Below are positions 1-52,448 of a stretch of DNA of 64,000 bases, one piece after another. Source of the DNA: Macrostomum lignano (lineage: Eukaryota); the NCBI GenBank assembly GCA_002269645.1, contig NIVC01000051.1:1-64000 (forward strand). Direction: 5' to 3'. The translations under genes were made by a program, and so were the position numbers. Every line of letters starts with the position of its first letter. Within the stretch, counting starts at the first letter, position 1. The notes under the pieces were generated by a model that did no database searches, was not told where the DNA came from, and saw only the letters and a program-made list of their open reading frames with translations.

Positions 1-1326
1 GTCAGTAGAAAAGCAAAATAGCGGCCCTGAATCTCACCAGTTAGAAATGGATCCCTTTGAGGTTGCTTGGGTGCAGAGTTCTGCACAGGTGCGGAGCGCG
101 GTCTTAGCAGGGGACTTTAGTGCTGGCGGCGCGCTGCTGGATGGTGCTGCCCCCAATGGCGCGTCCAGCCATCGCGTTTCCCAAGCTGCCGTTGTGCTGG
201 GATGCGGTGCTGGCCAACCATCGTGTGGGCACTCGACGGCGCGGTGCTCACGGTTGCACCTGTAACACATTGCACTCTGCCGCCGCAACTGATAAGGCGG
301 CTGGCGCGAACTCGACTGTTGCTGCGGCTGCTGCTGCAGCTGCCAACGTTGACCTCCTGCTGGCGGCGTTCTCGGCGGCGGGTTGCTACTGCGCGGGGTT
401 GCTGAAGTTGATGGAACTGCTGATGCTGCACATGGTGTGTGCCGGGTGTCGTAAATTGTGCGCTTCCGTTGGCGCTGCGGCGAGGAGTTGTAGGTACCAA
501 ACATCTGGAGCGTTGGCCCCACAAGTCCGCGGCTGATGGCAAGCTGGTTTCTATGGCTCCGGGGTGTCGTTGTCGCGCGATCCCCACAAGTAGAACTCTC
601 GCATTTCATTGCTTTCGTTGCTGCTCCTGCAGAGTCTCAGTTTGTTGTTCCATCACTTCACGCAACCAGTTTTCCTCGGGTCGAGATGACTTGGCGTCGT
701 GTTGCGCCACAGTGGGTGTCTGACTGTTGTCATTCTCGAGAACTCGTACATGTCTCGCTGCTGGCAGCGGTGCTACTCGCTGAGCCAAGCTAGCTGCTGT
801 CTCTAGGCATAGCACAGCCCTTCTCGCAGCAGTCGGATTCTGCAGTCTCACCAGGAATAGCTGTTCTCGAGCCGACTGGGCAATTCGCACTCCTACGTGA
901 ACTGGTCCACCAGCTCAGCTTGCTTTTGCACCAGAGTAAAGTGCAGGAACGCTTTGTCGGCCAGAGCAATTAATCAATCGCCATAGTCATCTACGCTCTC
1001 ATTCTTGCCTTGTTGGCAGCTTCGGAATTGCTCGGGATACTCCAGCGTGTCGGCCACGTGCGTGAACGCTCAGACAACCGCTGTTTGAACTCACTCACAC
1101 AAACGTTAGGTTGTCTGGCAGCTCCATCCTGACAACTGCGGGATAGGTTGTGGCAATGTCCAAATTCACAAGGACCTCCGCCTTCTTACGTCTGTTGTCT
1201 GTGATCCCGTTGAGCTCGCATCGCTCCTCCAGGGCCTGGATCCGACATCAAATTCCTGGTTCTGAGTGTACCGTTGAATCTTGACCAGTTTTGGCGCTGG
1301 AGCTCGATCCTGCTGCTGGGGCTGCT
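1..1326 (-). pseudogene. Ty3/Gypsy LTR retrotransposon gag (C-terminal part) and start of protease, degenerate
   Basis: Minus-strand frames give KLVKIQRYTQNQEFDV/(W)IQALEERCELNGITD, QQGKNESVDDY..LIALADKAF, EQLFLVRLQNP and a zinc knuckle CYRCNREHRAVEC (229-267). At the window edge FLTGEIQGRYFAFLL resembles an aspartic protease N-terminus. Stops and frameshifts are present. Joins in frame to the gag N-terminus at 5867-6055 once the LINE is removed. Confidence 0.75.
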
Positions 1327-1618
1327 TTCTTTTCTTCACTCCGACCTCCGACCGCCGCAGGCGGGGGCGGGCGCCGGGTGGCCGCCAGGGTCGTCGATGG
1401 GCGGCTCGGTCCGACCCACCCTCTTGAGGTAGTCACAGATAAGGGCGCCGCCACCCTCGAGAATGTCGTTCCAGGAAATGACCACCCCGCCCCAGGTGCG
1501 GATGCGGGCCTGGTGGTGGCAGGGGCAGTAGAGCATAAGATGATTGACCGAGTCTGGTTCTCCGCAGTCGGCGCATCGGTCGTTCTGAGCGAGGCCGAAC
1601 CGACACAGGTGTCGCGAG

Positions 1619-2440
1619 TCAGGGGGATTTCTTAGTGCGGATTTGGCTGACCGTCACCTGGCCCCACCTGGGAAGGTCATCGTGGCCTGGCGTCAGAGTC
1701 AGGTGCGGATGCGTGCGGTCCCGCGCAGTTCTCCAATTGGACAGTACGTGGCGGACGGCATTTTTGGCGGAGGCCTGGGAAAGTTGCGCGGTGTTCGGTT
1801 CCAATTCTGCAGCTTCGCGGGCGAGGGCGTCCGCTGCCTTGTTACCAGCAATGTCCGCGTGGCCAGGAACCCATTGGAAGTGGAGCCTGGTCTGAGCTGG
1901 GAGGTCGGTGATGAGTCGCCAGATCGTGAGGACGAGCGAATTAGTAGAACGGTACGGGCCTTGGTTGATGGCCTGAAGGCCTGATCGTGAGTCGGTACAG
2001 ATGTGAACCGAGAGCCGCGGGTTGCCGATGGTGTCGAGGGTTTGACGTAGGGCTCTTATCGCTGCCTCGATGGCGACCAATTCAGTGTGGGTGCTACTGC
2101 ACCACTTTCCGGCTTGCTGGCGGATGGACATGCGGAGTGCCTCGATGGATTCGGCAGTGAGGAGAGCACCTCCGCCGGCAGCAGCGCCGTCCGGGCTAAC
2201 GGAGCCGTCCGTCCAGATGGTGCAGTCGGCGCTCGGTAACAGGGCCAAGGTGGCTTCTGCCGCAGCACGGCGGGCCTCCAGTGGGTCGGATCTTTTGGTC
2301 GGCCGGGCGAGATCGTAGCGATGGTGATCGCCTGGTCGGCTAAGTGCCACGGCGGGAGAGCCGGGTAGTGCTGGCGGTCTATGTCTCCGATGTGGATACC
2401 GGCAAGGCTCAGGAGCCACAGGCCTACTCGTCTGAAGCAT
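1619..2440 (-). pseudogene. RNase H domain fragment of the LINE ORF
   Basis: CTIWTDGSV, ELVAIEAA, ICTDSRS, FQWVPGHADIAGNKAADALAR. Confidence 0.9.
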
Positions 2441-2583
2441 GGCCGGTGACTCAAGACGATGTCTTCATCGTGGAGGTCCGTGTCGACGGGCCGGTCCACT
2501 GGGCCTTCACGCTCCAAGCTTCGTGGGCTCTGTAGCGGAGGCAAGGGGCGACTTAGGCTACCATAAGGGTACGGGCCGGGTCG

Positions 2584-3645
2584 TCATCCGGTAGGCCGAG
2601 CAGGCGAATGAATTCGTTTGCGGCTAAGGTTTTGGCTTGGATGCTGAGGGCTGGTAGTCCGGCCTCGCGAGTAGGCAGCGTCGTCTCGTGATGCCCAGAC
2701 AGCCGTAATAATTCTGGCGCATTTGTTTTGCTCGGCCTCGAGTTTGAGGCGCGCCGTTGGTGCCGCATGATTGAAGTATAGTGCCGCTCCGTAGTCAAAA
2801 ACCGACCGTACGTAGGCCATGTAGGCCGCACGTAGGGTGCGATGGTGGGCGCCATAGCTCTTGCCAGCGAGCACTTGGATGCATCGACGTCGGTCGGCCA
2901 TTTTCTGTCGGACCATCTCAGTGTGTGGCGAGAAGGTGAGTTGGTCATCCAGCTTGAGTCCTAGGAATGTCGGCGTGGGGTCATAGGTGAGGTCGTGGTT
3001 TTCAAGTCGCAGAGCGGGTCGGACTTTGCCGCCGCACTCGGTAGGATCGAGGGTAAAGGTTGAGTAGGCACACTTGGAGTGGCTGAGGCTCACTTTCCAT
3101 TTACGGGTCCAGGCAGCCGCTTGGTCAAGGGCGGGTTGCAGTTTGTCAGCGCAGGCAGCGAGGGAGCGTCCTGTGGCAAGTAGCGCGGTATCGTCTGCGA
3201 AAAGTGAGCGGTGTACGTTCTCGGCCATCTCGGCATCAATGTCGTAGGCATATATAAGCCAAAGGAGGGGGGCGATCACGGATCCTTGCGGGAGGCCGTC
3301 CGTGAAAACTCTCCAGTTCGAGGTCGCACTGCCCCATCTAACACGTGCACGACGGTCTGCAAGGAAGTTTCTCAGGTACCGAATCAGGTGCTTGGGAATA
3401 CCTAGCCGGGCCATCTTGGCGTACAGGGCTGGTCGCCACACTTTATCGTATGCCTTAGCGAAGTCCAGGAGGACGAGGATAGCTCTCTCCGGTTTTCTCT
3501 GTTCGAAGGCGTCAAAGATGGCTTGGGTAATGCGGGCGAGCTGGTCCATGGTCGAGTGGCCTCGTCGGAAACCCGCTTGGTTCTGGTTGAGGAGGCCTCT
3601 GGTGTCCAGCCAGTGATAGAGTCTGTTTTGTAAGAGGCGCTCCAT
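2584..3645 (-). pseudogene. Reverse transcriptase fragment of the LINE ORF
   Basis: QAGFRRGHST, LLDFAKAYDKV, GLPQGSVIAPLLW, LFADD, FLGLKLD. Confidence 0.92.
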
Positions 3646-4401
3646 GAGTTTGCTGACGCAGCTAAGGAGAGATATAGGTCGGTAGGAGCTAGTGGCGCTC
3701 GGGTCTTTGTCTTTTTTCAGGATGGCGATGATTTCGGCCCGGCGCCAGGCAGTTGGGACTGAGCCAGTGAGCCAGCTACGGTTTAGTAGTTCCAGGAGGG
3801 CGTTCCGGCCTGCGTCGCCGAGTTGTTTGAGGAGTTCGTTGCAGACGCCGTCGGTTCCTGGTGATTTGCCAGTCTTGAGTTGATGGATCGCGACGTTGAG
3901 TTCGCCGATATTGAAAGGGCTGCAGATCTCCGTCCTCAGTCCATTGCAGGGGCAGTCGTTGGTGTTGCTCGCCTTGTGTGCCTCGATGACGACGGGTCTG
4001 TCTTCTGGTCTAGACTTTGGGAGCCGGGAGACCGTCGCGTAGTCGGCGCAGAATAGTTCGGCTTTCTCTTTATCCGTGATGGCTTTGGCGGGTGGATTCC
4101 CGGGATCATGGTTCTTGGTAAAGATAGTCGAGGGGGTGGCGGTCGGTCGTCGGCCGTCTTGGATCTTGATGAGGCGCCATAGACTGTCATTTGGCGACAG
4201 GTTCGAGACCGCTTCTCGGAAGTGTAGGGTTTTCTCCTCCTGGATGACTCACTCGGCAGTGGCCTTAGCGTCCTGGTACGCTTGGAGGGCCTGGGTATCC
4301 AGGGGGGCGGTCTGAACAGCCAGGCGTGCCGCTTCGCGGAGGTCGACAGCAGCTTGGCATTTCTCGTTCCAAAAAGGCGATCTCTGTCTGGGGCCGTCTC
4401 C

Positions 4402-5726
4402 TTAGGGGATAGATGACCTAGCAGCCTTCAAAATAGAGTCGGTGAGGGCTCGGTTGACGCTTTCGATGTGTGTGGGCGCTTGGATGTCGATTTGCTTGAG
4501 AAGTTCATCAGATTTTTTGTGGAACGCTGACCAGTCGGCTTTTTTGAAATTGAAACGGCCCCTGCGGGATCGTTGGTGCGGGGGCGATTTCGTGGAGATC
4601 TTGATCCAGATAGGGAGGTGATCTGATCCGACATCGGCCCCTGTCTGCCAGGTGGTCCTGCCGGCCAGGTCGGCCGTGGCAAAGGTGACGTCCGGGGTTG
4701 ATCGGCCTCCGGTGGCTGGGTTAATGCGAGTGCAGCTGCCGTCGTTGAGCAGAGCCAAGTTCAGGCGGCAGCTCCAGTCGTCTAGTTTTTGGCCTAGTGT
4801 GTCTTCGCGCTGGTGGCGGTCCCAGGCGGTCGCGTGGGCATTGAAGTCGCCTGCCACGATCGAGTTGGGGCCTACCGCAAGGGCCTCTGGGTTCATGTTT
4901 TGCTCGGGGGTGTTGTCCCTGAGGGCTCTAGTGGCCGGCGGCGAGTAGACGTTGATCAGCACGATGGGCTTGCTCGAAGTAGACGGGTAGATCGAGGTGG
5001 AGCTGCAGAAAGTGAGTTGGTCGGCAGGAGATTGGTACGGATTGTTGTGGGGTTCGAAAGGGACATCGTCACGAACGAGCGTGAGGATGCCCCTTGGTTC
5101 GGCTGTCCGCGGCGTTGGTCCGGGTTCTCGTAGTCGAGGCGGGCTGTGGCATTGTAGCCTGAGAACTTTGGTGGGCGGGAGCTCGGTCGCAGGAAAGTTT
5201 CTTGAAGAAGGACCGCGTGGGGTTTGAGTTGGTCTAGGGTGGCGGCGAGCTCGGTCGTTCTCGCTCCGAGGCCATTGCAGTTAAGTTGGAGGATAACAAT
5301 GTCGGTGGGCTTTTGGGTCAAGTCCGGTTCGGTTCTGTCGGTCTGACTGGTCGTGGTTTTGTCATTGTTGGCGTTAGGGCTCTGGGCGGCAGTTTGGCGT
5401 TGGCGGTGATCGCAGTGTTGGGGCGTCTCGGCCGTGCCTGGTGGGCTGGAGCTGTTCGGTGTGCGGTTACAGGCTTCACAGACCCAGTTACTACCTTGTC
5501 TGGTGAGTCTCCTAATTTCAGTGTTGCTGATGTTAATACAGGCTCCGTGGGACCACGTGCGGCAGCAGGTGCACTCGAGGGCACTGACTCTGCCGACGTT
5601 TCGTCCGCATGATCCACACAGCCAGGTGGGTCCCAGATTGGGCTCGACGTCTCCGGCTCGGAGGACCAGGGACGCGAGGGCCAGGCAGGTGAGGGCCGGG
5701 ACCAGGATGGTGAGCGACGTTCTCAT
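4402..5726 (-). pseudogene. N-terminus of the LINE ORF: hydrophobic leader, 2A-like motif, PHD finger, APE endonuclease
   Basis: ATG at 5726; GDVEPNLGP at 5628-5654; PHD Cys/His pattern; APE motifs. Frameshift at the C-run 5090-5093, which is intact in the duplicate copy. Confidence 0.85.
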
Positions 5727-5799
5727 GGGCGGAGGCTTCCCCTGAAGCGGCCGGTAGTGCAGGCCGCAGGTGGCAGTCTCCAAAAGAGGTGAGTGTGAC

Positions 5800-5867
5800 T
5801 AGGACAATTGGCACAGAGGGAGGCCTCTGTGGCGCCACCCCCACGGGAAGGGTGTCCTATTGACGAC
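5800..5867 (-). ncRNA. HDV/CPEB3-like self-cleaving ribozyme (predicted) at the LINE 5' end
   Basis: RNA reads GUCGUC AA UAGGACA CCC UUCCCGU GGG GGUGGC G C CACAGAGG CCUC CCUCUGUG C CAAU UGUCCUA, i.e. P1a, J1/2, P2a, P3a, L3, P3b, P1b, P1.1, P4, J4/2, P2b in HDV order. Putative catalytic C at 5811. Folded by eye only; P1 is weak (6 bp, three G-U). Confidence 0.7.
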
Positions 5868-6055
5868 TGCTGGGGCTGCTGGTACACGTGGTGATGGTGT
5901 TGTGGCTGGCCCAGGCTGTTCTGCTCCAAGCACCGGCGCACCTCGTCGGTCACCGCGCGAATCATCTCGTTGTAGGTCGGTCTGGTTGCTGAATTGTCTG
6001 AGCCCGCGACGTCGGCTGTCGCGTCCGCGGCCGTTGAATTAGTTGCTGAAGCCAT
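5867..6055 (-). pseudogene. Gypsy gag N-terminus
   Basis: ATG at 6055, MASATNSTAAD..HHHHVYQQPQQ. Continues in frame as QDRAPAPKLVKIQRY at 1312 after removing the LINE and one TSD copy. Lies ~50 nt downstream of the PBS. Confidence 0.75.
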
Positions 6056-6104
6056 AGCATTGTAGTTTCTAAATGACTCGTCAAATGGATTGTGGTGTTT
6101 CAAT

Positions 6105-6124
6105 ATCCCACTTAGCTGACACCA
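6105..6124 (-). promoter_or_regulatory. Primer-binding site, tRNA-Leu type
   Basis: Minus strand CA-T-TGGTGTCAG(CT)AAGTGGGAT matches the common Gypsy tRNA-Leu PBS TGGTGTCAGAAGTGGGAT with a 2-nt insertion. Confidence 0.65.
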
Positions 6125-6125
6125 A

Positions 6126-7302
6126 TGAGGTGGGGCGGGGAAAGTTTTTAGGGAGATTTGGTAGTTGGTGGATTGTCCGGTGGTCGCTTGATTTAATGTC
6201 GAGTATGAGCAGCTCAGGCCTTCGAATCGGCGCCATTGTTAATTTGCACAGATTAAATCCGGAAAATCCGTGTGGACGAATCCCAGTTAAAATGTCTCGT
6301 AGATACTCCGACTGCCGGGGTCCTCAATCCCGGGGGAGGGTAGTTTTAGTCGTAGGTGAACAGTCTTCGTTGGCGCAAGCATTCAGAGTGGGTCCTCAGA
6401 TACCAAATTTATCGTATCTCGAATGTTTGACTTAACTTGTTACTAACAGTGGAGTAGAGCTGCCACCACCATAATTCGCGTATTATGGAACGTTAGGGTC
6501 TCAGAGCTTGCTTCGAGATGAGACTGGGTTGTTTTACGCCCCACGGGCAAATGACTCAAAATAAGCTAGGCTTTGGGTTATTAATGAGAAAATTAATGTT
6601 AGATCAACTGTTTTATTAAGAGTTCAGCGACAGGATACTAAGTTAATAAGTTCAACGGAGAAAATAGCTTGGCGTGTGTGCGAAATCAACTAAGAGTAGC
6701 AAATAGTAGAGGGGACCAAACTCTACTCCAGCGGATGATTGGCTAGTACCGCAGTGCACGACTGGATAAAATAAACGACTTAACGCTAGTTGTAAATAAG
6801 TTTGGCGGATTAAAATATTAGTTGTTAAATTGAATGGGGAGAGAGAGAGCGAGGGCGGGCAAAAGAAGGGGGCAAGGAGAAAGAAAACAAAAAAAACCTT
6901 AAAGAATTAAAGAAAAAATTGGGCAGCTCCAGGGGCACCATTATATAGAGATTGAAAATGCAAAAGATGGACAAATGAGGTCAAACATTGGTGGCAAAAG
7001 GTGGTCACGGGGTCCAAGCAATGAACAGACAAAATTAACACGGAAAGATAGGGCGATAAACAAAGTTTCCAAAGGAGGGACGCGAAAGACCAGAAAAAGG
7101 AGCGGGAAAACCATTGCAAGAATGGGGAAAACTGACGGAATAAACCAACAACTGGGGCACAGGGTGGACACAGAGGACCAAAAACTGGGGACAGCGGGAA
7201 TGGGTCAAAAGGTGGTTTAATAAGTCACGTAAAATAATATTAAATTTAGAAACTAAAATAATAAAGTTCATTGGATTGTTAGTGGCAGCCCCAACTGCCA
7301 CA
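6126..7302 (-). mobile_element. Putative 5' LTR of the Gypsy element (~1.18 kb)
   Basis: Ends in CA next to the PBS. Candidate start TGTGGCAG at 7302. Minus-strand TATATAA (6941-6947) lies upstream of AATAAA (6612-6617). The partner LTR is outside the window, so the outer boundary is unverified. Confidence 0.5.
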
Positions 7303-7395
7303 ATATGATTATAAAATAGGCTTATAAGAATAACTATATTATCTGTAAAATTATCAAGACTATGGCTATGCCTATATTAGAACATTGCTTTGCCA

Positions 7396-7972
7396 CCAGG
7401 TTGCGGATAGTATGCATGTACACTGGAACTTTTCAGCATACAAAACCGCCACCCTAAGTCCTTGGCGTACACAATTGGCATATACAACCCCTGGCAAACT
7501 TTGTTGGTGTACACTATTGGCATACACAAGTAACACAGCCACGTATACTTTTTGGTGTACAAATTTTGGTGAATAAATTCATGCCATGCATGAAAATTAT
7601 AATGTAAATTAACGTTTTTACATAAACTAACAAAAAATTTGTATTGTCAGTGATAAAATTTTTGCTTCTTTGAAATTAACAATGAATAAATTTAGTGTAA
7701 ACTTTTGCTAAGAGTATCAATTTTGCATTATATTTTTTGTAGGTATAATTTAAGTTTGTTTAAATTGAAAATATTCATAATATTTTAAAAACACTTTTAA
7801 TACAAAAGCCTTTCTAAAAAAACTCTACTTGTGAAAAACCATATTACCTTTGTTAGGAATTTTTGGTGTATATTTTATTAGTGCAACATTTTGTTTTTGG
7901 CATACATTGGCGTACAAAGTCCTTGACGCCCGAATTTGTCCAGCGTACACGGATACATGATCTGCACACTGG
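7396..7972. mobile_element. 577-bp non-autonomous DNA transposon (hAT-like MITE)
   Basis: 8-bp TSD CTTTGCCA (7388-7395, 7973-7980). Imperfect TIRs CCAGGTTGCGGAT and CCAGTGTGCAGAT. Repeated subterminal TGGYRTACA-like motifs. Confidence 0.6.
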
Positions 7973-8060
7973 CTTTGCCATAATACTTTGCTTTAATTTT
8001 TATAATGTATTTAAGGCCTTTTCTCAGAAACTCAAACTTGTTTGCCCTATCACGTCTGAG

Positions 8061-9139
8061 ATGCAATCTCTAAATGAAGAGCAGCGGCATAGACTAGTTA
8101 TAAAATATAAAATTAAGCACCTTGGGCTAAGCAACAATGCAATTGCAAAATATTTTGCTGAGCTCAATGTCCCAAGATCAACCATTTATATAATTCTAGA
8201 TTGCTACTCAGTAACTGGAGAAGATACTGTGTTATGAAAAAAGGGGTCAAGACAACCAGCTACCAAGGTCACTGCCACTTTGATAGAAAAGATGTCGAAT
8301 GATGTTAGGATGGGTCTGTCCTAGCGCAAAATTGCATGCAAATATGACATCAGCCAGCTGTAAGTCAATGAGATTCTCAAGAAGCAGGGACTGAGTGCAT
8401 TGTGTCATTGTGTGAAAAAAAAGAAAAAAAGGTGTCATTGTGTTGTTGGAACAGAAAGAGTGCCAGCATGTAAGGATTGACAGGCTCTATTGTGCTGTGC
8501 TAGTATGAGATGACAGCAGACTGGACATTGTCATGGACAATGAATCGTACTTCTTTTTGTCATCCAATGTCATCCCTAGTAACAGGTTCTATTATGCAAC
8601 AGCTCAAGGTGATGCACCATTGCACCTGATAAGGTCAGGTGTTCACCTAGCAAGAAATTTGAGGCCAAGTCTTGGTCTGGCTGGCCATCAGCAAGAAGGG
8701 CATATCCAAGGTCTTCTTCTGCCATGGTAGCTCAATGAACAAAGAGATCTATATAAGAGAGTGCATTCACAAGCGTCTATTGCCATTTATTAAAGAGCAG
8801 CATGCTGATAGCAACTACCTGTTCTGGCCTGACCTGGCAAGCTATCACTATGCTTGTGATGTCATTGACACATTTCAAAAGGAAGGTGTCAATTTTGTCA
8901 GCAAGGAGTTCAATCCTCTCAATGTACCATAGCTGTGACCACTTGAGAACTTCTGGGAGATGTTGAAGCAAAAGGTTTGCCATCACAATTGGATGGCAGA
9001 CAGTCTGGAATAGCTGGAAAATTGCATTCGCTACTGCCTCCGCCAGGTGGATCTGCACTGTGTACAGGAGATAATGACCAATGTCAAGTCCCAGATTCGC
9101 CAAGCTCAGGCTAATGGTGTTGAAGCTGTTTGGCAATGA
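8061..9139 (+). pseudogene. Tc1/mariner DD37E-type (ITmD37E-like) transposase pseudogene, copy 1
   Basis: HTH-like N-terminus (IAKYFAELNVPRSTIY), VMD(N)ESYF, VWLAIS, FWPDLASYHY, NPLNVP*L*PLENFW; 37 residues between the second D and the E. Multiple stops. Right TIR ends CAATCACCCTG|TA at 9227; left TIR not found. Confidence 0.85.
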
Positions 9140-9363
9140 GCCAGACAATCCCTTATATATTTAACTAAATCCAAGTTAAAAAAACAAATTAAAATTAAAA
9201 ATGTCCAGATTTTTACCAATCACCCTGTAAAAATATCACTATTTAAATTATGATCTTAAGCTAGACCCTAGGCAAGGCCTAATATTAACTATTATATCGA
9301 TTATTAAAGAATCGAGTCTGAAAAGAATATTCAGATATCTAGAAAAGAAAGCCATATTAATAT

Positions 9364-9722
9364 CTATAGCATATTCATATCTATAGCCATATATCTATAT
9401 CCAGATTCATATATATAGCCATATTCATATCTATAGCCATATATTCATATCTATAGCCATATTCATATCTATAGCCATATTCATATATATAGCCATATTC
9501 ATATATATAGCCATATTCATATCTATATCCAGATTCATATATATAGCCATATTCATATCTATAGCCATATTCATATCTATAGCCATATTCATATCTATAG
9601 CCATATTCATATCTATAGCCATATTCATATCTATAGCCATATTCATATATATAGCCATATTCATATCTATAGCCATATTCATAACCATAGCCAAATTCAT
9701 AACCATAGCCATATTCATAGCC
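9364..9722. repeat. 18-bp minisatellite (ATAGCCATATTCATATCT)n, ~20 units
   Basis: Direct reading; source of the spurious MAIDMN ORF. Confidence 0.95.
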
Positions 9723-9798
9723 AATCCCTAGTTAAGCCTGACCACACTACTTCAAGTAGACTAATTAGCAACATTCGCCCATAGTTTTCAGTCAATGA

Positions 9799-11721
9799 AT
9801 GGATGACGTCAGCTCGATTGGCTCTGCTTCTACGGCGGACGAATTTTGTGTTGTAAACGCGGATCCAACTGTGAGGCGGCACTGCGATTCCGGTAACTTT
9901 CAGTCCAGCATGACCGAAGCCATGGCTGATACGAACTCTGCTGCCGCCGCCGCTGCTGCCGCCCCAGTTGTCAAGGACAACCCATTTAACAATAGCGCTC
10001 TTGACGATGACGGAGATAACATTGGCGATCGAGATGCTGGAGGTGCTGCGTTTTCATCGAAAGAGCAGTGAGTTTCGGGTGTTTTTTTGCTACATTTGCT
10101 TAACGTCTCTTAGAGCAAAGATGCTATATTACTGTAATGTAGAGGTAACTACATGTATGTAATGTATGCTGTAATGTAGGCGTCACTCAATCTGGATTTA
10201 TCCCACTCCTACAGATAAGTATCTAGATTTATCCCACTACTATAGAGATGAGGATCTAGATTCATCCCACTTCTATAAGGATGAGGGCCTAGATTCATCC
10301 CACTCCTATAGAGATGAGCATATAGATTTATCCCACTCCTATAGAGATGAGGATCTAGATTTATCCCACTTCTATAAAGGTTGAGGATCTAGATTTATTC
10401 CACTCCAATAGCGATGAGGATCTAGATTTATCCCACTGCTACAGGGATGAGGATCTATATTTATCCCACTGCTATAGGGATGAGGATCTAGATTTATCCC
10501 ACTGTTATTAGGGATGAGGATCTAGATTTATCCCACTGCTATAGGGATGAGGATCTAGATTTATCCCACTTCTACAGATGAGGATCTAGATTTATCCCAC
10601 TACTATAGGGATGAGGATCTAGATTTATCCCACTGCTATAGGGATGAGGATCTAGATTTATCCCACTGCTATAGGGATGAGGGTCTAGATTTATCCCACT
10701 GCTATAGGGATGAGGATCTAGATTTATCCCACTGTTATTAGGGATGAGGATCTAGATTTATCCCACTCCTATAGAAATGAGGATATAAATTTATCCCACT
10801 CCTATAGAGATGAAGATCTAGATTTATCCCACTGTTATTAGGGATGAAGATCGAGATTTATCCCACTGTTATTAGGGATGAGGATCTAGATTCATCCCAC
10901 TCCTATAGAGATAAGGATATAGATTTATCCCACTCCTATAGAGATGAAGATCTAGATTTATCCTACTCCTATAGCGACGAGGATCTAGATTTATCCCACT
11001 GCTATAGTGATGGGTATCAGCCTCAATAATTGCTGTTCGTGTATAAAAATTGGCCTATCGTGGCTTGCTGTTGCAATTCTCGCCCATGTAGGGCCAACCC
11101 CCAAACTCACAGAGGTTTGTACACTACTGGCGATAAAAATAAGCCAGAGCCGCTGATAATGTACACCCTGTGTGAGCGCCTGTACCTGAGTACTTTTTTG
11201 AGCTATCTATGTGCCTTATCTATCTATATAATATGGAATATCGTGGCGGTGTACAGAGATATCGAAGAAGCTCCGGACGGTGCCAGAACTCCGACTGCTT
11301 CTTCGTTGAACCTGGACAGCGGCGGCCAGGAGGGCATCAGCTATTGCGACATGCTCTACCTCGGCTCTGTGTCGGTGTCTCGAGCTCGTGACGAAGACGA
11401 AATCCAGCGCTATTTGAGCCAGTGCGACACTGCCCAGGCTAAACCGGCTAGCATATTTGTGCCGTACACTAACCGGGGCAGCGTGCGGGTGCTGGACCAG
11501 TCCGATAAGCGGCTGCTATTAGAAGAGCACCCGGTCACGTCTATAGCTTACTGTTGCGTTGGCCGTGGCCACGGCTTGATTAAACGTTTCGCTTTCACTG
11601 TTAGCGAGGCTATGAAATCTGGCGAACTGCAGCAGCAGCAACAGCAGCGAGTTGTGATGCTGTACGCTCCATCCGATGCAGCAGCTTTGTCTGTTGTTAA
11701 CCAGATGGCTCAAGCGTTTCG
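9799..11721 (+). pseudogene. RABGAP1: Duplicated 5' fragment of RABGAP1 (exons 9799-10067 and 11257-11721, PTB domain)
   Basis: Near-identical to 21651-21919 and 22584-23048, with intact GTGAGT donor, TACAG acceptor and GTTAGT donor. Truncated in intron 2 by the duplication junction. Confidence 0.85.
10188..11008. repeat. 33-bp minisatellite (ATTTATCCCACTCCTATAGGGATGAGGATCTAG)n
   Basis: Direct reading; intron 1 of the duplicated fragment. Confidence 0.95.
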
Positions 11722-11823
11722 GTTAGTTGCTTAACTATTAATATTTGTTTATGTATATGCCCAAGGAATTGGGATAATCGAGGATTATACAGTTTTTAGG
11801 GAAGTGTGATAATTGAAGATTAT

Positions 11824-11905: not shown

Positions 11906-14544
11906 ATCTCGGCATCAATGTCGTAGGCATATATAAGCCAAAGGAGGGGGGCGATCACGGATCCTTGCGGGAGGCCGTCCGTGAAAACTCTCCAGTTCGA
12001 GGTCGCACTGCCCCATCTAACACGTGCACGACGGTCTGCAAGGAAGTTTCTCAGGTACCGAATCAGGTGCTTGGGAATACCTAGCCGGGCCATCTTGGCG
12101 TACAGGGCTGGTCGCCACACTTTATCGTATGCCTTAGCGAAGTCCAGGAGGACGAGGATAGCTCTCTCCGGTTTTCTCTGTTCGAAGGCGTCAAAGATGG
12201 CTTGGGTAATGCGGGCGAGCTGGTCCATGGTCGAGTGGCCTCGTCGGAAACCCGCTTGGTTCTGGTTGAGGAGGCCTCTGGTGTCCAGCCAGTGATAGAG
12301 TCTGTTTTGTAAGAGGCGCTCCATGAGTTTGCTGACGCAGCTAAGGAGAGATATAGGTCGGTAGGAGCTAGTGGCGCTCGGGTCTTTGTCTTTTTTCAGG
12401 ATGGCGATGATTTCGGCCCGGCGCCAGGCAGTTGGGACTGAGCCAGTGAGCCAGCTACGGTTTAGTAGTTCCAGGAGGGCGTTCCGGCCTGCGTCGCCGA
12501 GTTGTTTGAGGAGTTCGTTGCAGACGCCGTCGGTTCCTGGTGATTTGCCAGTCTTGAGTTGATGGATCGCGACGTTGAGTTCGCCGATATTGAAAGGGCT
12601 GCAGATCTCCGTCCTCAGTCCATTGCAGGGGCAGTCGTTGGTGTTGCTCGCCTTGTGTGCCTCGATGACGACGGGTCTGTCTTCTGGTCTAGACTTTGGG
12701 AGCCGGGAGACCGTCGCGTAGTCGGCGCAGAATAGTTCGGCTTTCTCTTTATCCGTGATGGCTTTGGCGGGTGGATTCCCGGGATCATGGTTCTTGGTAA
12801 AGATAGTCGAGGGGGTGGCGGTCGGTCGTCGGCCGTCTTGGATCTTGATGAGGCGCCATAGACTGTCATTTGGCGACAGGTTCGAGACCGCTTCTCGGAA
12901 GTGTAGGGTTTTCTCCTCCTGGATGACTCACTCGGCAGTGGCCTTAGCGTCCTGGTACGCTTGGAGGGCCTGGGTATCCAGGGGGCGGTCTGAACAGCCA
13001 GGCGTGCCGCTTCGCGGAGGTCGACAGCAGCTTGGCATTTCTCGTTCCAAAAAGGCGATCTCTGTCTGGGGCCGTCTCCTTAGGGGATAGATGACCTAGC
13101 AGCCTTCAAAATAGAGTCGGTGAGGGCTCGGTTGACGCTTTCGATGTGTGTGGGCGCTTGGATGTCGATTTGCTTGAGAAGTTCATCAGATTTTTTGTGG
13201 AACGCTGACCAGTCGGCTTTTTTGAAATTGAAACGGCCCCTGCGGGATCGTTGGTGCGGGGGCGATTTCGTGGAGATCTTGATCCAGATAGGGAGGTGAT
13301 CTGATCCGACATCGGCCCCTGTCTGCCAGGTGGTCCTGCCGGCCAGGTCGGCCGTGGCAAAGGTGACGTCCGGGGTTGATCGGCCTCCGGTGGCTGGGTT
13401 AATGCGAGTGCAGCTGCCGTCGTTGAGCAGAGCCAAGTTCAGGCGGCAGCTCCAGTCGTCTAGTTTTTGGCCTAGTGTGTCTTTGCGCTGGTGGTGGTCC
13501 CAGGCGGTCGCGTGGGCATTGAAGTCGCCTGCCACGATCGAGTTGGGGCCTACCGCAAGGGCCTCTGGGTTCATGTTTTGCTCGGGGTGTTGTCCCTGAG
13601 GGCTCTAGTGGCCGGCGGCGAGTAGACGTTGATCAGCACGATGGGCTTGCTCGAAGTAGACGGGTAGATCGAGGTGGAGCTGCAGAAAGTGAGTTGGTCG
13701 GCAGGAGATTGGTACGGATTGTTGTGGGGTTCGAAAGGGACATCGTCACGAACGAGCGTGAGGATGCCCCCTTGGTTCGGCTGTCCGCGGCGTTGGTCCG
13801 GGTTCTCGTAGTCGAGGCGGGCTGTGGCATTGTAGCCTGAGAACTTTGGTGGGCGGGAGCTCGGTCGCAGGAAAGTTTCTTGAAGAAGGACCGCGTGGGG
13901 TTTGAGTTGGTCTAGGGTGGCGGCGAGCTCGGTCGTTCTCGCTCCGAGGCCATTGCAGTTAAGTTGGAGGATAACAATGTCGGTGGGCTTTTGGGTCAAG
14001 TCCGGTTCGGTTCTGTCGGTCTGACTGGTCGTGGTTTTGTCATTGTTGGCGTTAGGGCTCTGGGCGGCAGTTTGGCGTTGGCGGTGATCGCAGTGTTGGG
14101 GCGTCTCGGCCGTGCCTGGTGGGCTGGAGCTGTTCGGTGTGCGGTTACAGGCTTCACAGACCCAGTTACTACCTTGTCTGGCGAGTCTCCTAATTTCAGT
14201 GTTGCTGATGTTAATACAGGCTCCGTGGGACCACGTGCGGCAGCAGGTGCACTCGAGGGCACTGACTCTGCCGACGTTTCGTCCGCATGATCCACACAGC
14301 CAGGTGGGTCCCAGATTGGGCTCGACGTCTCCGGCTCGGAGGACCAGGGACGCGAGGGCCAGGCAGGTGAGGGCCGGGACCAGGATGGTGAGCGACGTTC
14401 TCATGGGCGGAGGCTTCCCCTGAAGCGGCCGGTAGTGCAGGCCGCAGGTGGCAGTCTCCAAAAGAGGTGAGTGTGACTAGGACAATTGGCACAGAGGGAG
14501 GCCTCTGTGGCGCCACCCCCACGGGAAGGGTGTCCTATTGACGA
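11906..14544 (-). mobile_element. 3'-truncated duplicate of the Ingi-like LINE
   Basis: Identical to 3227-5866 apart from a few SNPs and indels. Same 5' flank and TSD copy (14545-14558) and the same TAA at 13080-13082. Confidence 0.92.
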
Positions 14545-14545
14545 C
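14478..14545 (-). ncRNA. Second copy of the predicted HDV-like ribozyme
   Basis: Same sequence as 5800-5867. Confidence 0.7.
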
Positions 14546-15983
14546 TGCTGGGGCTGCTGGTACACGTGGTGATGGTGTTGTGGCTGGCCCAGGCTGTTCT
14601 GCTCCAAGCACCGGCGCACCTCGTCGGTCACCGCGCGAATCATCTCGTTGTAGGTCGGTCTGGTTGCTGAATTGTCTGAGCCCGCGACGTCGGCTGTCGC
14701 GTCCGCGGCCGTTGAATTAGTTGCTGAAGCCATAGCATTGTAGTTTCTAAATGACTCGTCAAATGGATTGTGGTGTTTCAATATCCCACTTAGCTGACAC
14801 CAATGAGGTGGGGCGGGGAAAGTTTTTAGGGAGATTTGGTAGTTGGTGGGATTGTCCGGTGGTCGCTTGATTTAATGTCGAGTATGAGCAGCTCAGGCCT
14901 TCGAATCGGCGCCATTGTTAATTTGCACAGATTAAATCCGGAAAATCCGTGTGGACGAATCCCAGTTAAAATGTCTCGTAGATACTCCGACTGCCGGGGT
15001 CCTCAATCCCGGGGGGAGGGTAGTTTTAGTCGTAGGTGAACAGTCTTCGTTGGCGCAAGCATTCAGAGTGGGTCCTCAGATACCAAATTTATCGTATCTC
15101 GAATGTTTGACTTAACTTGTTACTAACAGTGGAGTAGAGCTGCCACCACCATAATTCGCGTATTATGGAACGTTAGGGTCTCAGAGCTTGCTTCGAGATG
15201 AGACTGGGTTGTTTTACGCCCCACGGGCAAATGACTCAAAATAAGCTAGGCTTTGGGTTATTAATGAGAAAATTAATGTTAGATCAACTGTTTTATTAAG
15301 AGTTCAGCGACAGGATACTAAGTTAATAAGTTCAACGGAGAAAATAGCTTGGCGTGTGTGCGAAATCAACTAAGAGTAGCAAATAGTAGAGGGGACCAAA
15401 CTCTACTCCAGCGGATGATTGGCTAGTACCGCAGTGCACGACTGGATAAAATAAACGACTTAACGCTAGTTGTAAATAAGTTTGGCGGATTAAAATATTA
15501 GTTGTTAAATTGAATGGGGAGAGAGAGAGCGAGGGCGGGCAAAAGAAGGGGGCAAGGAGAAAGAAAACAAAAAAAACCTTAAAGAATTAAAGAAAAAATT
15601 GGGCAGCTCCAGGGGCACCATTATATAGAGATTGAAAATGCAAAAGATGGACAAATGAGGTCAAACATTGGTGGCAAAAGGTGGTCACGGGGTCCAAGCA
15701 ATGAACAGACAAAATTAACACGGAAAGATAGGGCGATAAACAAAGTTTCCAAAGGAGGGACGCAAAAGACCAGAAAAAGGAGCGGGAAAACCATTGCAAG
15801 AATGGGGAAAACTGACGGAATAAACCAACAACTGGGGCACAGGGTGGACACAGAGGACCAAAAACTGGGGACAGCGGGAATGGGTCAAAAGGTGGTTTAA
15901 TAAGTCACGTAAAATAATATTAAATTTAGAAACTAAAATAATAAAGTTCATTGGATTGTTAGTGGCAGCCCCCAACTGCCACA
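14545..15983 (-). mobile_element. Duplicated Gypsy gag N-terminus (to 14733), PBS (14783-14802) and putative LTR (14804-15983)
   Basis: Copy of 5867-7302. Confidence 0.65.
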
Positions 15984-16076
15984 ATATGATTATAAAATAG
16001 GCTTATAAGAATAACTATATTATCTGTAAAATTATCAAGACTATGGCTATGCCTATATTAGAACATTGCTTTGCCA

Positions 16077-16653
16077 CCAGGTTGCGGATAGTATGCATGT
16101 ACACTGGAACTTTTCAGCATACAAAACCGCCACCCTAAGTCCTTGGCGTACACAATTGGCATATACAACCCCTGGCAAACTTTGTTGGTGTACACTATTG
16201 GCATACACAAGTAACACAGCCACGTATACTTTTTGGTGTACAAATTTTGGTGAATAAATTCATGCCATGCATGAAAATTATAATGTAAATTAACGTTTTT
16301 ACATAAACTAACAAAAAATTTGTATTGTCAGTGATAAAATTTTTGCTTCTTTGAAATTAACAATGAATAAATTTAGTGTAAACTTTTGCTAAGAGTATCA
16401 ATTTTGCATTATATTTTTTGTAGGTATAATTTAAGTTTGTTTAAATTGAAAATATTCATAATATTTTAAAAACACTTTTAATACAAAAGCCTTTCTAAAA
16501 AAACTCTACTTGTGAAAAACCATATTACCTTTGTTAGGAATTTTTGGTGTATATTTTATTAGTGCAACATTTTGTTTTTGGCATACATTGGCGTACAAAG
16601 TCCTTGACGCCCGAATTTGTCCAGCGTACACGGATACATGATCTGCACACTGG
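16077..16653. mobile_element. Duplicated 577-bp hAT-like MITE
   Basis: Copy of 7396-7972 with the same TSD CTTTGCCA. Confidence 0.6.
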
Positions 16654-17738
16654 CTTTGCCATAATACTTTGCTTTAATTTTTATAATGTATTTAAGGCCT
16701 TTTCTCAGAAACTCAAACTTGTTTGCCCTATCACGTCTGAGATGCAATCTCTAAATGAAGAGCAGCGGCATAGACTAGTTATAAAATATAAAATTAAGCA
16801 CCTTGGGCTAAGCAACAATGCAATTGCAAAATATTTTGCTGAGCTCAATGTCCCAAGATCAACCATTTATATAATTCTAGATTGCTACTCAGTAACTGGA
16901 GAAGATACTGTGTTATGAAAAAAGGGGTCAAGACAACCAGCTACCAAGGTCACTGCCACTTTGATAGAAAAGATGTCGAATGATGTTAGGATGGGTCTGT
17001 CCTAGCGCAAAATTGCATGCAAATATGACATCAGCCAGCTGTAAGTCAATGAGATTCTCAAGAAGCAGGGACTGATTGCATACAAGAAAAAAAGTGCTAT
17101 TTGTGTTGTTGGAGCAGAAAGACTGCCAGCGTGTGAGGATTGATAGGTTCTACTGTGCTATGCTAATAGGAGATGACGGCAGACTGGACATTGTAATGGA
17201 CAGTGAATCATACTTCTCTTTGTCATCCAATGTCATCCCTAGTAACAGGTTCTATTATGCAACAGCTCAAGGTGATGCACCATTGCACCTGATAAGGTCA
17301 GGTGTTCACCCAGCAAGAAATTTGAGGCCAAGTCTTGGTCTGGCTGGCCATCAGCAAGAAGGGCATGTCCAAGGTCTTCTTCTGCCATGGTAGCTCAATG
17401 AACAAAGAGATCTATATAAGAGAGTCAGAGAGTGCATTCACAAGCGTCTATTGCCATTTATTAAAGAGCAGCATGCTGATAGCAACTACCTGTTCTGGCC
17501 TGACCTGGCAAGCTATCACTATGCTTGTGATGTTATTGACACATTTCAAAAGGAAGGTGTCAATTTTGTCAGCAAGGAGCTCAATCCTCTCAATGTACCA
17601 TAGCTGTGACCACTTGAGAACTTCTGGGAGATGTTGAAGCAAAAGGTTTGCCATCACAATTGGATGGCAGACAGTCTGGAATAGCTGGAAAATTGCATTC
17701 GCTACTGCCTCCGCCAGGTGGATCTGCACTGTGTACAG

Positions 17739-20700
17739 CACAGCTATCTTGAAGACCAGTTAAGTGACAAAAAAATTGCCCAAAAAACAGTTTGTGTTTT
17801 CAAAAACAATGCACCACTAGAAGTTTTTGTATAAATTTTCAAAATGATTTTGCGAGATATTTTTATTTTATTGCATGTTTTTACTTTTACAATGATTTCT
17901 GTGCTGAAATTATAGCATCTGTGGTCTGGTAGTTAAGGGTTACTTGTATAATGTATAGCATACGTATAATTTTTGATCAAACAAATCAATACATAAATTA
18001 GTAAACTTCATTAAATGAAAAATGGTGAATAATTAGACTTTCAATAACATTTTGATAGAAAATCACCTTTACCTTTAAAAATAGTTATTAACTAAAAGCA
18101 ACTTGTTCACTGGTGCCGTGAGTTGTACACAATTGTGCATTTCAGCAGCTGCTTGCTGTACTGTGCACTCGTTTTCGCCACTTTGTAGCTGCTGTCCCAG
18201 AGGCGACTGAAGTCCGCATGCACAGCCTCACTTGCCTGCTCCGACCAGAATCCAAGGCCATGCAGAGCTGATCCAGGCATTTGCGGCTGGTTGCGAAGAA
18301 ATGGAGCAACATGCTCAAAGACAGCATGGACTTTAGGGCTGACAGGAATGCCAACATCCTTGTAGGCCGCAGCAAATGCCTTTATTGCTGCATCGTAGCC
18401 GTCTAGAAGCACCAGTCCAAAACAAGTCCTACAGACTTCACGAAAGGTGCGAAGGGCTTGTACAATAGGCATGGCTGCTATGGCACCGCAGTCTTGCAGC
18501 ATTTGCTCAAGTGAGTCGACACTGTTTAGCAGCTTGCTGCAGTGGTTGCCAGTAAACTGCCCACCTTGATATGGTGCCTGCCAGATGTTTAAACGATTAG
18601 CAAAGTCCTGTGCTCGTATTGTACAGTTGGAGATTGACTGTAATCGAGAATCAAGCTCCTTGAACAGCCGATTGACAATACCTAGCATCAAGTGCAACTC
18701 CATTGGAGGCACAATGTTGATCACCAAAGTCTCGTCTGGAAAATCAAGCAGCGGCATTCTAACACAATTCTTGAACCTGGCAGCCGAGTGCCTTGTGCTA
18801 CTTGTCTGTTGCACCAGCTCTTGGTAGCTGTTAGCATTCTGTCGTATGCTGCCAAATGACCGCAAGGGAACTTCATGATGTATGCTACAGAATTCTTTGC
18901 AGTTCAACTCGCACCATGGACAGGGGTGACTGCTGCTGGCACACTGGAGGCCAAGTAGTGCGTTAGCCATCTTCATGTCAACAGCAAGACTGAAGCGTAC
19001 CTGTTGCAGTCTCAGAAGGTCCAGGACAGCCTTGATGTTGAAGTAGGACTCTCGAATATCTTCGACAATTGCAAGGATCAGCAGTTTTTTCACTCCACTA
19101 TCACAGAAACGAGAACTGCATGCGGCAGCAGAATAGCTTGTCTTTGTTTTAGGTTGTTGCTCTGCTCCAATTCGCACAATAGTGAGACAGACCTTCAAGA
19201 AGTTGCCTCCTCCATCTATGCCAATTTTAACTTTAAAGTTTCCTTCTTCAATGCAGCGGTGGTACAGAAGGCTATCAATGAGTCCCTCTGGGTCCTTGCA
19301 GTATACAACGTGTCTCATCTCTGTTGCTGCATCCTTCCCAACCTCCAGCTGCATTGCCTTTACATCAAAGAAATCACCTAGCTCCTCATCCAGCTGACGT
19401 AACTTTGACATCAGTCCAGAGTCCACAGACTTGCGTCCTTTCCAGTTGCGCAGGAACTGAGCTGCCAGTTTAGTCTGCTGGCCACTTAAGCCAAGAGTAT
19501 TCTGAAACCTGTTGAACTCTTTGGCAGTCACAGGCTTGTCAACAAATGTGGCACAAGAGTTTTTGCATTGCGCTGTAGTTGTCACTGTCAGCTGATAAGG
19601 TCCACGAGTTGCTAACTGTGTGGAGAGAAAGGCACCACTGGTGCACTTTGTCTTTATGAGGTCTGATGCATGGATTTCTGCACCTCTTTTGTCCATGGCA
19701 AACTGAAGTGAAAGGTTTTTTCTTCTTTGAGTCACATTGCAATTGTGAGATATACCTTTGCCAAGCACAGAGTAGCAGCGCATGCAGGTTGATACAGGTT
19801 GAGCTTCAGGCAGAGGATCTTCGATGCCAGATGAAGGTCTCCCACGAGGGTGTGCACTGACTTTCCGTGATCCAAGGCCTTTACCAATAGGTGTCCATCT
19901 TGCGGCAGTGCAGATGCCACCCTCGCACATGGTCGTTGAGCGTGTTAGGACAGTCATTTTTATGCTTGAAAAGTCGAATGATCGAGGCAAAGCATCTTCT
20001 TCTCGCTTTCCTGCCTCAATGTCAGCCAGCAGAGTTCTGCATCGAGTGCACACTGCAGCTGGTAGTTGCTCATCATCAAGATTACAGCTTGGCATAAAAA
20101 ACCGGCGAATCCTTGTGAGTACAGTTTCACCAATTGGCTTCATGCTGTTTCCTTTTTGCATGCAAATGAGACATACTTTGAGCCGATTTTCTGCATGTGA
20201 TGCTCCGCATGATGGGTTTGGCATGGTTGCAGCTAAATACTATATCAGGTTGAGTTAATTTTCCAGTTTTGATTGCTTAAGATGACACTTTCATGCGGCA
20301 TTGATATTATAGCTTGTTCATTCCACTACCAAATGAGGTTACAATTTTAGGCTCACACAGCTTGTACATAACTTTAAGCTTGTACTCAGCAGTGTGAGTT
20401 GATGTCTCAACTGATTTTAGTGTAAATGTACGCTTGTATATAGGCATCCAGCCTTTATAAAGTTATGCAATTTTAAAAACACAAAGGCTAGGAGCTGCTA
20501 CACATCTCTTACATCACATTTTAAAAGTTGTTCTGCTAAAAAGATACACTGTGTTCTGAATTATTAGTGGGTCACAGATATTCTTAGCTTGGAACTCCTT
20601 GTAAAAGTCAAAACATGCAATAAAATAAAAATATCTCGCAAAATCATTTTGAAAATTTATATAAAAACTTCTAGTGGTGCATTGTTTTTGAAAACACAAC

Positions 20701-20745
20701 CCGTTTTTTGGGCAATTTTTTGTCACTTAACTAGTCTTCAAGATA
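17739..20745 (-). mobile_element. Chapaev/Transib-related (RAG1-like) DNA transposon, ~3.0 kb, ~150-bp TIRs
   Basis: Absent from copy 1 at the same site. Left end CACAGCTATCTTGAAGACCAGTTAAGTGACAAAAA; the right end is its reverse complement but lacks the terminal 6 nt. Contains a single intact ORF. Confidence 0.85.
18107..20224 (-). CDS. Intact 705-aa DDE transposase with Chapa-like zinc finger and RAG1/Transib-like core
   Basis: H-x7-C-x2-C..P..VC-x2-C N-terminus; GIDGGG (D), AVDMK (D), HPCPWC, ELHLMLG, GNHCSKLL, PKVHAVFEHV, WSEQASEAVH (E). Transposase identity is solid; the Chapaev versus Transib call is from recalled motifs. Confidence 0.8.
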   Translation of the reverse strand: MPNPSCGASHAENRLKVCLICMQKGNSMKPIGETVLTRIRRFFMPSCNLDDEQLPAAVCTRCRTLLADIEAGKREEDALPRSFDFSSIKMTVLTRSTTMCEGGICTAARWTPIGKGLGSRKVSAHPRGRPSSGIEDPLPEAQPVSTCMRCYSVLGKGISHNCNVTQRRKNLSLQFAMDKRGAEIHASDLIKTKCTSGAFLSTQLATRGPYQLTVTTTAQCKNSCATFVDKPVTAKEFNRFQNTLGLSGQQTKLAAQFLRNWKGRKSVDSGLMSKLRQLDEELGDFFDVKAMQLEVGKDAATEMRHVVYCKDPEGLIDSLLYHRCIEEGNFKVKIGIDGGGNFLKVCLTIVRIGAEQQPKTKTSYSAAACSSRFCDSGVKKLLILAIVEDIRESYFNIKAVLDLLRLQQVRFSLAVDMKMANALLGLQCASSSHPCPWCELNCKEFCSIHHEVPLRSFGSIRQNANSYQELVQQTSSTRHSAARFKNCVRMPLLDFPDETLVINIVPPMELHLMLGIVNRLFKELDSRLQSISNCTIRAQDFANRLNIWQAPYQGGQFTGNHCSKLLNSVDSLEQMLQDCGAIAAMPIVQALRTFREVCRTCFGLVLLDGYDAAIKAFAAAYKDVGIPVSPKVHAVFEHVAPFLRNQPQMPGSALHGLGFWSEQASEAVHADFSRLWDSSYKVAKTSAQYSKQLLKCTIVYNSRHQ

Positions 20746-21035
20746 ATGACCAATGTCAAGTCCCAGATTCGCCAAGCTCAGGCTAATGGTATTGAAGCTG
20801 TTTGGCAATGAGCCAGACAATCCCTTATATATTTAACTAAATCCAAGTTAAAAAAACAAATTAAAATTAAAAATGTCCAGATTTTTACCAATCACCCTGT
20901 AAAAATATCACTATTTAAATTATGATCTTAAGCTAGACCCTAGGCAAGGCCTAATATTAACTATTATATCGATTATTAAAGAATCGAGTCTGAAAAGAAT
21001 ATTCAGATATCTAGAAAAGAAAGCCATATTAATAT

Positions 21036-21574: not shown

Positions 21575-21650
21575 AATCCCTAGTTAAGCCTGACCACACT
21601 ACTTCAAGTAGACTAATTAGCAACATTCGCCCATAGTTTTCAGTCAATGA

Positions 21651-43184: not shown

Positions 43185-43207
43185 ACTGTATTAAATGCAA
43201 TTTCTGG

Positions 43208-49071: not shown

Positions 49072-52448
<3,377 letters not shown>

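Follow-up and report, generated by a model that had tools for sequence, protein, structure and literature searches.

A conserved HDV-like ribozyme fold, probably self-cleaving, at the exact 5' end of a 2A-bearing single-ORF LINE family

A LINE on the minus strand of a 64,000-nucleotide stretch of the Macrostomum lignano genome (assembly GCA_002269645.1, contig NIVC01000051.1, positions 1 to 64,000; in its full length referred to here as the window) has a conserved HDV-like ribozyme fold precisely at its 5' end. The fold occupies the first 68 nucleotides of the element and recurs at the same position in seven relatives from other assemblies. Its catalytic activity is inferred from the structure, the invariant nucleotides of the core and the coincidence of the element boundary with the predicted cleavage site. 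Judged from sequence, it is quite probable that these 68 nucleotides represent a nested double-pseudoknot self-cleaving ribozyme of the HDV type, belonging to a family of single-ORF LINEs.

Read on the minus strand from 5867 to 5800, the 68 nucleotides contain all of the helices and junctions of an HDV-type ribozyme in the correct order (GUCGUC AA UAGGACA CCC UUCCCGU GGG GGUGGC GC CACAGAGG CCUC CCUCUGUG CCAAU UGUCCUA). A preliminary description of this DNA had claimed that the whole set of HDV helices is nested in the first 68 nucleotides of the element, and each of the helices and junctions that it listed is indeed there (Table 1). Together they make up the nested double pseudoknot P1-P2-P3-P3'-P1'-P4-P2', with P1' abutting P3, in the window and throughout the family. 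In HDV-like ribozymes, L3 has 7–8 nt with a G required for activity, and P1.1 consists of one or two pairs linking L3 to J1/4. The seven-nucleotide L3 of the window copy includes a G, and its C5847 could form with G5833 a P1.1 of one pair; J4/2 supplies the candidate catalytic C (C5811), followed by the constrained A (A5809). The topology, the position of the cleavage site and the layout of the catalytic core correspond to those described for HDV-like ribozymes (PMC4908430, PMC3774820). When the window site was folded without pseudoknots, P2, P3 and P4 were recovered; the z-score was modest (-2.1).

Table 1. Positions of the ribozyme fold, its host LINE and the duplicated block in the window, and of the same fold in related loci (coordinates of the respective locus)
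Feature	Position	Strand	Remarks
Whole HDV-like ribozyme fold	5800-5867	-	68 nt; G1 = 5867; strict descriptor and leave-one-out model R1
P1, 5' strand GUCGUC	5862-5867	-	pairs with 5834-5839; 6 bp including three G.U
P1, 3' strand GGUGGC	5834-5839	-	immediately 3' of P3
P2, 5' strand UAGGACA	5853-5859	-	partner UGUCCUA at 5800-5806; 7 Watson-Crick bp
P3 CCC/GGG (3 bp) with L3	5840-5852	-	strands 5850-5852 and 5840-5842
L3 UUCCCGU (7 nt)	5843-5849	-	C5847 proposed to pair with G5833 as P1.1
J1/4 GC (G5833, C5832)	5832-5833	-	G5833 in the proposed single-pair P1.1
P4 hairpin CACAGAGG-CCUC-CCUCUGUG	5812-5831	-	8 bp, 4-nt loop
J4/2 CCAAU	5807-5811	-	C5811 first; candidate catalytic cytosine
LINE body, frameshifted	1327-5867	-	~4.5 kb; ORFs, Pfam, sequence
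Degenerate 2A-like motif GDVEPNLGP	5628-5654	-	213 nt downstream of G1
PHD	~5469-5618	-	Pfam
APE	~4609-5291	-	Pfam
RT	~2959-3645	-	Pfam
RNase H	~1808-2227	-	Pfam
CCHC remnant	~1525-1575	-	read in the sequence
GAA-rich tail	1327-1337	-	read in the sequence
Target-site duplication AGCAGCCCCAGCAG, 5' copy	5867-5880	-	last G shared with G1
Target-site duplication AGCAGCCCCAGCAG, 3' copy	1313-1326	-	directly after the GAA-rich tail
Identical ribozyme duplicate	14478-14545	-	segmental duplication
Segmental-duplication block (5.8 kb, 99% identity)	3227-9067 = 11906-17738		5' half of the LINE and 3.2 kb of upstream flank
L130 ribozyme fold	1280-1358		
L001 ribozyme fold	3196-3274		
L004 ribozyme fold	4470-4552		
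L008 ribozyme fold	3985-4062		
L007 ribozyme fold	4381-4457		
L002 ribozyme fold	1801-1866		
L129 ribozyme fold	38-105		

Helices of this kind are common by themselves, with about 21 structure-only matches per shuffled window; an initial, loose structural descriptor gave 1472 matches, was uninformative and was replaced by versions with constraints on the core sequence. Since the helices alone are not rare, it is their combination with the core nucleotides that carries weight. The strict descriptor, which was drawn up after the site had been seen though from previously known features, demands, besides the helices, U as the first base of L3, with C at position 2-3 and G close to the 3' end of the loop, a G following P1', and C-N-A-A in J4/2. 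Over both strands, its matches in the window are confined to 5867 and 14545, that is, to the site and its duplicate, whereas 300 dinucleotide shuffles yielded a mean of 0.017 matches per window, with at least one match in 5 of the 300. The CPEB3 ribozyme escapes this first strict descriptor because it has one base between P3 and P1'. A generalised descriptor, v3, that accommodates the spacer base recognises the CPEB3 ribozyme, used as a positive control, and also detects the 5' ends of four of the relatives (L001, L004, L008 and L130); its background in control loci amounts to about 12 start sites per 1.39 Mb. The controls included 120 unrelated JGI metagenome loci that share a 20-nt core pattern; none of the 120 has a LINE protein match, and for this reason they serve as a control only. 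The fold was completed in one of them, the GC-rich L097, under the looser v2 descriptor.

The models of known families gave no signal. A gathering-score Rfam scan of the window produced no relevant match, and at E ≤ 10 no family, whether HDV, CPEB3 or other, matched positions 5760-5910 or the relatives L129 and L130, so that this check, proposed in the preliminary description, was negative at both thresholds. The HDV/CPEB3-type models of Rfam are narrow, and the pseudoknot cannot be encoded in them.

The extent of the host element follows from a 14-bp target-site duplication, AGCAGCCCCAGCAG, that flanks both of its ends, and the LINE therefore spans 5867 to 1327. The last G of the duplication is base 5867, the predicted G1, which bears out the earlier claim that the insertion boundary and the predicted cleavage site are one and the same. 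The element has the build of Ingi/L1Tc-type LINEs, with a single ORF encoding 2A, APE, RT, RNase H and a zinc knuckle and with no ORF1; in this copy the ORF is frameshifted. We use "Ingi-like" as a description of this domain architecture, not of a position in an RT phylogeny. The closest named homologue is a barnacle (Amphibalanus amphitrite) protein annotated as "transposon BS", an annotation that is uninformative about the clade to which the LINE belongs.

Searches with the N-terminal ORF of the element, with its RT and with a profile of N-termini found few homologues; the contigs recovered contain LINEs of like build, at 40–64% amino-acid identity, and seven of these relatives possess the same RNA fold (Table 1). 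The family, with the domain order 2A, optional PHD, APE, RT, RNase H and CCHC, occurs in crustacean-type and marine metazoan assemblies; a PHD finger between 2A and APE is found in the window element and in L001. In the window, and in those five relatives that were searched for a 2A motif, 190–220 nt separate the fold from the 2A downstream of it, and in L129 and L130, which were read separately, the 2A motif lies 150–220 nt downstream of the fold. The relatives have a canonical 2A, D[VI]ExNPGP, located as far from the fold as the degenerate motif is in the window. The size of the ribozyme ranges from 66 to 83 nt across the family, with a J1/2 of 1–3 nt. L004 has a target-site duplication of 11 bp, including one mismatch, that directly follows the (GAA)n tail and ends 1 nt before G1; none was found where it was looked for in L001, L002, L007 and L008, and element boundaries are accordingly backed by target-site duplications in two cases, the window and L004. 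About four subfamilies are represented among the eight sequences, five of which come from a single assembly, so the number of independent events that they represent is small. No ribozyme was detectable in four other homologues (L003, L005, L006 and L132), in which the 5' end is truncated or lost at the end of a contig, or the divergence is too great. A distant, AT-rich homologue, L131, seems by eye to have an HDV-like fold at ~92-150, with P3 inverted to GGG/CCC, an L3 of UCUACGC and a J4/2 of CCAA, about 140 nt upstream of the start codon of the 2A ORF; it was not counted because its P2 needs a bulge and the covariance model described below does not detect it.

The fold is supported by covariation within this small family. 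In the alignment of the window sequence with the seven relatives (A3), which was curated by hand with the structure in mind and padded with N, 96.2% of the pair cells are standard pairs, compared to 50–56% after a shift of the 3' partners by 1–3 columns, and 15 of 24 pairs have changed on both sides, compared to 3–7 after sliding; none of 500 shuffles reached the observed values. P2 is 100% paired, with changes on both sides in six of seven pairs in A3 and four of six in alignment A5, and in P4 all seven basal pairs of A3 have changed on both sides. P1 is 95.8% paired and two of its pairs have changed on both sides; position 4 varies by subfamily among G.U, A-U, U-A and G-C, and position 5 is U.G, U-A or A-U. 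RNAalifold applied to A3 independently yields P2, P3 and P4. Four nucleotides are invariant in all eight sequences, namely the C of L3 and the G of J1/4 that would form the one-pair P1.1, the C of J4/2 and the A two bases after it, and a G near the 3' end of L3 is present in all eight members as well. Covariation among family copies, which the preliminary description had put forward as a means of checking the fold, is therefore seen in P1, P2 and P4, with the core nucleotides kept and 96% of the pairs formed.

To avoid the circular reasoning inherent in an alignment curated by hand, a covariance model, R1, was built on the seven relatives alone, leaving out the window sequence, with the apical part of P4 removed and P1 left unpaired. 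When the whole window was searched with filters off, R1 found 5800-5867 and its duplicate at 35.2 bits (E-value 5e-6), with a full-length match at 5800-5867 (model positions 1–62 of 62), while the next-best match in the window scored 10.6 bits. The alignment of the real sequences made by R1 is 96.6% paired, compared to 48–55% when slid, and P1, which is absent from the model, is 95.8% paired in it. These results bear on the suggestion that the fold is a chance product of GC-rich sequence. The abundance of structure-only matches in shuffled windows and the completion of the fold in a GC-rich control locus are what such a suggestion would predict, but matches become very rare once the core features are required, the site lies at the exact start of the element, the leave-one-out model recovers it and the fold recurs at this position in seven relatives; chance is thus an exceedingly improbable explanation.

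A further possibility is that the conservation reflects protein coding, with the 2A reading frame continuing through the ribozyme and the helices being incidental. This frame is in fact open across the entire ribozyme in six of the eight members (L001, L002, L007, L008, L129 and L130), and an AUG is present in J1/2 of L002 and L129. However, a TAG closes the frame at the 3' end of P2 in the window, and in L004 the frame opens only past the ribozyme. Moreover, the sequences of P2 and P4 are unrelated between subfamilies while pairing is retained, and helices that differ wholly in sequence but still pair are the pattern of a conserved RNA, not of a conserved peptide. Coding as the source of the conservation consequently appears very unlikely.

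In the details of P1, the family differs from the canonical HDV ribozyme. P1 consists of 6 bp, instead of about 7 bp opening with a G.U wobble, and the pair at the cleavage site is G-C in six of the eight family members and G.U in the other two. A P1 of about 7 bp has been described for R2 (PMC3774820), and the G.U wobble at the cleavage site is tied to metal binding in the HDV ribozyme literature, as indicated by the title of a reference listed in PMC3185411. The shorter P1 and the mostly G-C first pair are departures from HDV-type detail, not from its topology. P1 contains a bulge or a single mismatch in three of the eight members. The weakness that the preliminary description had conceded, six base pairs of which three are G-U, is real in the window copy, with a P1 duplex energy of just -1.5 kcal/mol, compared to -8 to -9.6 kcal/mol in the intact relatives L130, L004 and L008. 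The three wobble pairs could derive from C-to-T transitions. This copy has decayed elsewhere too, with a frameshifted ORF and a 2A that reads NLGP instead of NPGP, and as a LINE it is a dead relic. The weak P1 and the frameshifts suggest that its ribozyme may no longer cleave.

The most probable of the alternatives is that the family possesses a conserved, structured 5' UTR of HDV-like topology but without catalysis, acting as a promoter within the element (at the DNA level, as with Pr77), as an IRES-like element or as a binding site for the protein of the element. The structure is conserved, yet its conservation is not a measure of cleavage; the pair at the cleavage site is mostly G-C, and the 5' regions of R2 and L1Tc have been reported to have such additional roles (PMC6765202, PMC3185411). 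In those known cases, though, the additional roles are compatible with cleavage. Furthermore, the positions that are invariant here are the ones involved in HDV catalysis (the C of J4/2, the pair of L3 C with J1/4 G, a P3 of 3 bp and a P1' that abuts P3), and the base 5' of P1 is where the boundaries of the elements fall. We therefore consider a purely non-catalytic role improbable, and a self-cleaving ribozyme remains the favored interpretation.

Such a ribozyme would be in keeping with what has been established for other LINEs, since HDV-like ribozymes are known at the 5' ends of R2, L1Tc, Baggins and RTE elements (PMC6765202, PMC3185411) and those of L1Tc and R2 cleave at the first base of the element (PMC3185411, PMC3774820, PMC6765202). 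In general, HDV-like ribozymes cut directly before the first nucleotide of P1, in a Mg2+-dependent reaction that yields a 5'-OH and a 2',3'-cyclic phosphate; in the present family, the target-site duplications of the window and L004 point to such a site indirectly. The closest parallel is L1Tc of Trypanosoma cruzi, a member of the ingi clade. Its single ORF encodes APE, RT and RNase H and has 2A at the N-terminus (PMC3185411, PMC3383444, PMC3708506), and its ribozyme lies in the first 77 nt, has a one-pair P1.1 and cleaves at nucleotide +1 (PMC3185411). The likeness to this ribozyme (L1TcRz/Pr77), drawn from layout by description rather than by comparison of sequences, extends to a fold within the first ~70–80 nt, a predicted cut at the first nucleotide of the element, the single pair of P1.1 and the domain composition of the ORF with its N-terminal 2A; unlike L1Tc, the elements found here have metazoan hosts, and those of the window and L001 have the PHD finger between 2A and APE. 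PMC3708506, which makes no mention of ribozymes, describes 2A sequences in metazoan LINEs, among them an Ingi element of Aplysia and elements in which a PHD separates 2A from APE. In the literature that was compared, the pairing of a ribozyme with an N-terminal 2A is described only for the trypanosome L1Tc.

The R2 ribozymes are likewise HDV-like double pseudoknots at the 5' end, and they free the element from a co-transcript (PMC3774820). They resemble the present family in having few invariant nucleotides (in R2, the catalytic C, the G of L3 and the A in J4/2) and a variable P4 (PMC3774820). R2 differs in being specific for 28S rDNA and in using a restriction-like endonuclease. Its P1 often recruits upstream 28S sequence, whereas P1 here begins at the first base of the element itself, and its J1/2 can reach hundreds of nucleotides, compared to 1–3 nt here. 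The intronic CPEB3 ribozyme of mammals is similarly compact (~68 nt) and has a one-pair P1.1. Its L3, UUCACGU, is identical to that of L004, L007 and L008 and one base away from the UUCCCGU of the window, and its J4/2 starts with C-G-A-A, as in L008, L002 and L129. CPEB3 differs in being single-copy and intronic, unconnected with a transposon, and in the extra base from P3 to P1', and its Rfam model matches neither the window nor L129 and L130. Lastly, Baggins and RTE LINEs of insects and other metazoans have an HDV-like ribozyme at the 5' end and are described as promoter-less elements transcribed from introns or from upstream retroelements (PMC6765202). They belong to other LINE clades and, as described there, lack a 2A.

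On this basis, a LINE of the family would be read through from transcription of the host or of another retroelement upstream. The ribozyme would then fold and cut just 5' of G1 (5867 in the window), with C5811 of J4/2 acting as the general acid, leaving an RNA with a 5'-OH that begins at the first base of the element. The folded ribozyme would stay at the 5' end, where it may aid cap-independent translation, and the 2A about 200 nt downstream would remove any leader peptide from the APE-RT-RNase H protein. Full-length reverse transcription of such an RNA would make the insertion boundary coincide with the cleavage site. We infer catalysis, co-transcription and any role in translation alike from the sequences and their parallels. 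A bolder proposal would unite the ribozyme and 2A in one conserved, two-level escape module, common to metazoan and trypanosome L1Tc/ingi elements, in which the ribozyme is also translated as a leader. We regard this as doubtful; if it were true, the ribozyme would trim upstream RNA and 2A upstream peptide, and processed and unprocessed co-transcripts could both give rise to LINE protein.

The surroundings of the elements were also inspected. When the flanks of the window LINE are joined across the empty site, an ORF is restored on the same strand, with a CCHC motif downstream and a gag-like appearance; Pfam has no match for this interrupted ORF in the window. The window LINE lies in sense inside it (5868-6103 and 34-1312). 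In L004, an upstream ORF on the same strand (3707-4468) is confirmed by Pfam as another APE, and in L008 the LINE lies in sense with a neighbouring LINE fragment (1231-2588). The element of L007 is antisense to the adjoining LINE fragment (4078-4389), so nesting in sense is not universal, and the upstream ORF of L002 gave nothing useful with Pfam. Among the four loci whose context is readable, three thus have the LINE in sense, either inside another ORF or shortly downstream of one, a proportion that is suggestive of a dependence on read-through transcription and is not significant.

What these observations add is a compact (66–83 nt) ribozyme family, undetected by Rfam, in metazoan LINEs that encode 2A. 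For ribozyme specialists it is a useful but expected extension of the known ribozymes at LINE 5' ends. The alignment and the covariance model could help to locate the true 5' ends of such LINEs when the genomes of crustaceans and other marine invertebrates are annotated, and they make it testable whether promoter-less LINEs that rely on read-through have a general solution in the combination of ribozyme and 2A.

The preliminary description also pointed to a second copy of the ribozyme at 14478-14545. An identical copy does exist there, but it is not an independent insertion: it shares the upstream flank and the target-site duplication with 5800-5867 and is a single insertion that was copied later. 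Being part of a segmental duplicate with 99% identity, it adds no independent evidence. The tandem duplication as a whole measures ~8.6 kb (3227-11823 versus 11906-23151, ~95–99% identity); it also copies minisatellite arrays, and one of its breakpoints lies inside the LINE, at 3227. A 3-kb insertion (17739-20740) is present in the second duplication unit only, with the empty site at ~9067-9069 in the first. It has 155-bp terminal inverted repeats (17745-17899 and 20592-20745, 95% identity) and a 705-aa ORF on the minus strand (18107-20224), for which Pfam gives only a weak zf-AD match, and it resembles a DNA transposon that was mobile after the duplication.

A second, unrelated LINE is located on the minus strand at 39510-44784 and encodes an ORF1 and an ORF2 with APE, RT and RNase H; its ORF1 has no Pfam match, and this element has neither a 2A motif nor an R1 match at its 5' end. 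Long minisatellite arrays at 27.3–38.7 kb and 54.7–63.9 kb make up much of the window and give rise to long spurious ORFs. The minus strand also harbors, in support of a metazoan origin, two exons of an NK-type homeobox gene (50326-50889 and 49072-49617; Pfam Homeodomain), the second of which encodes the end of the homeodomain.
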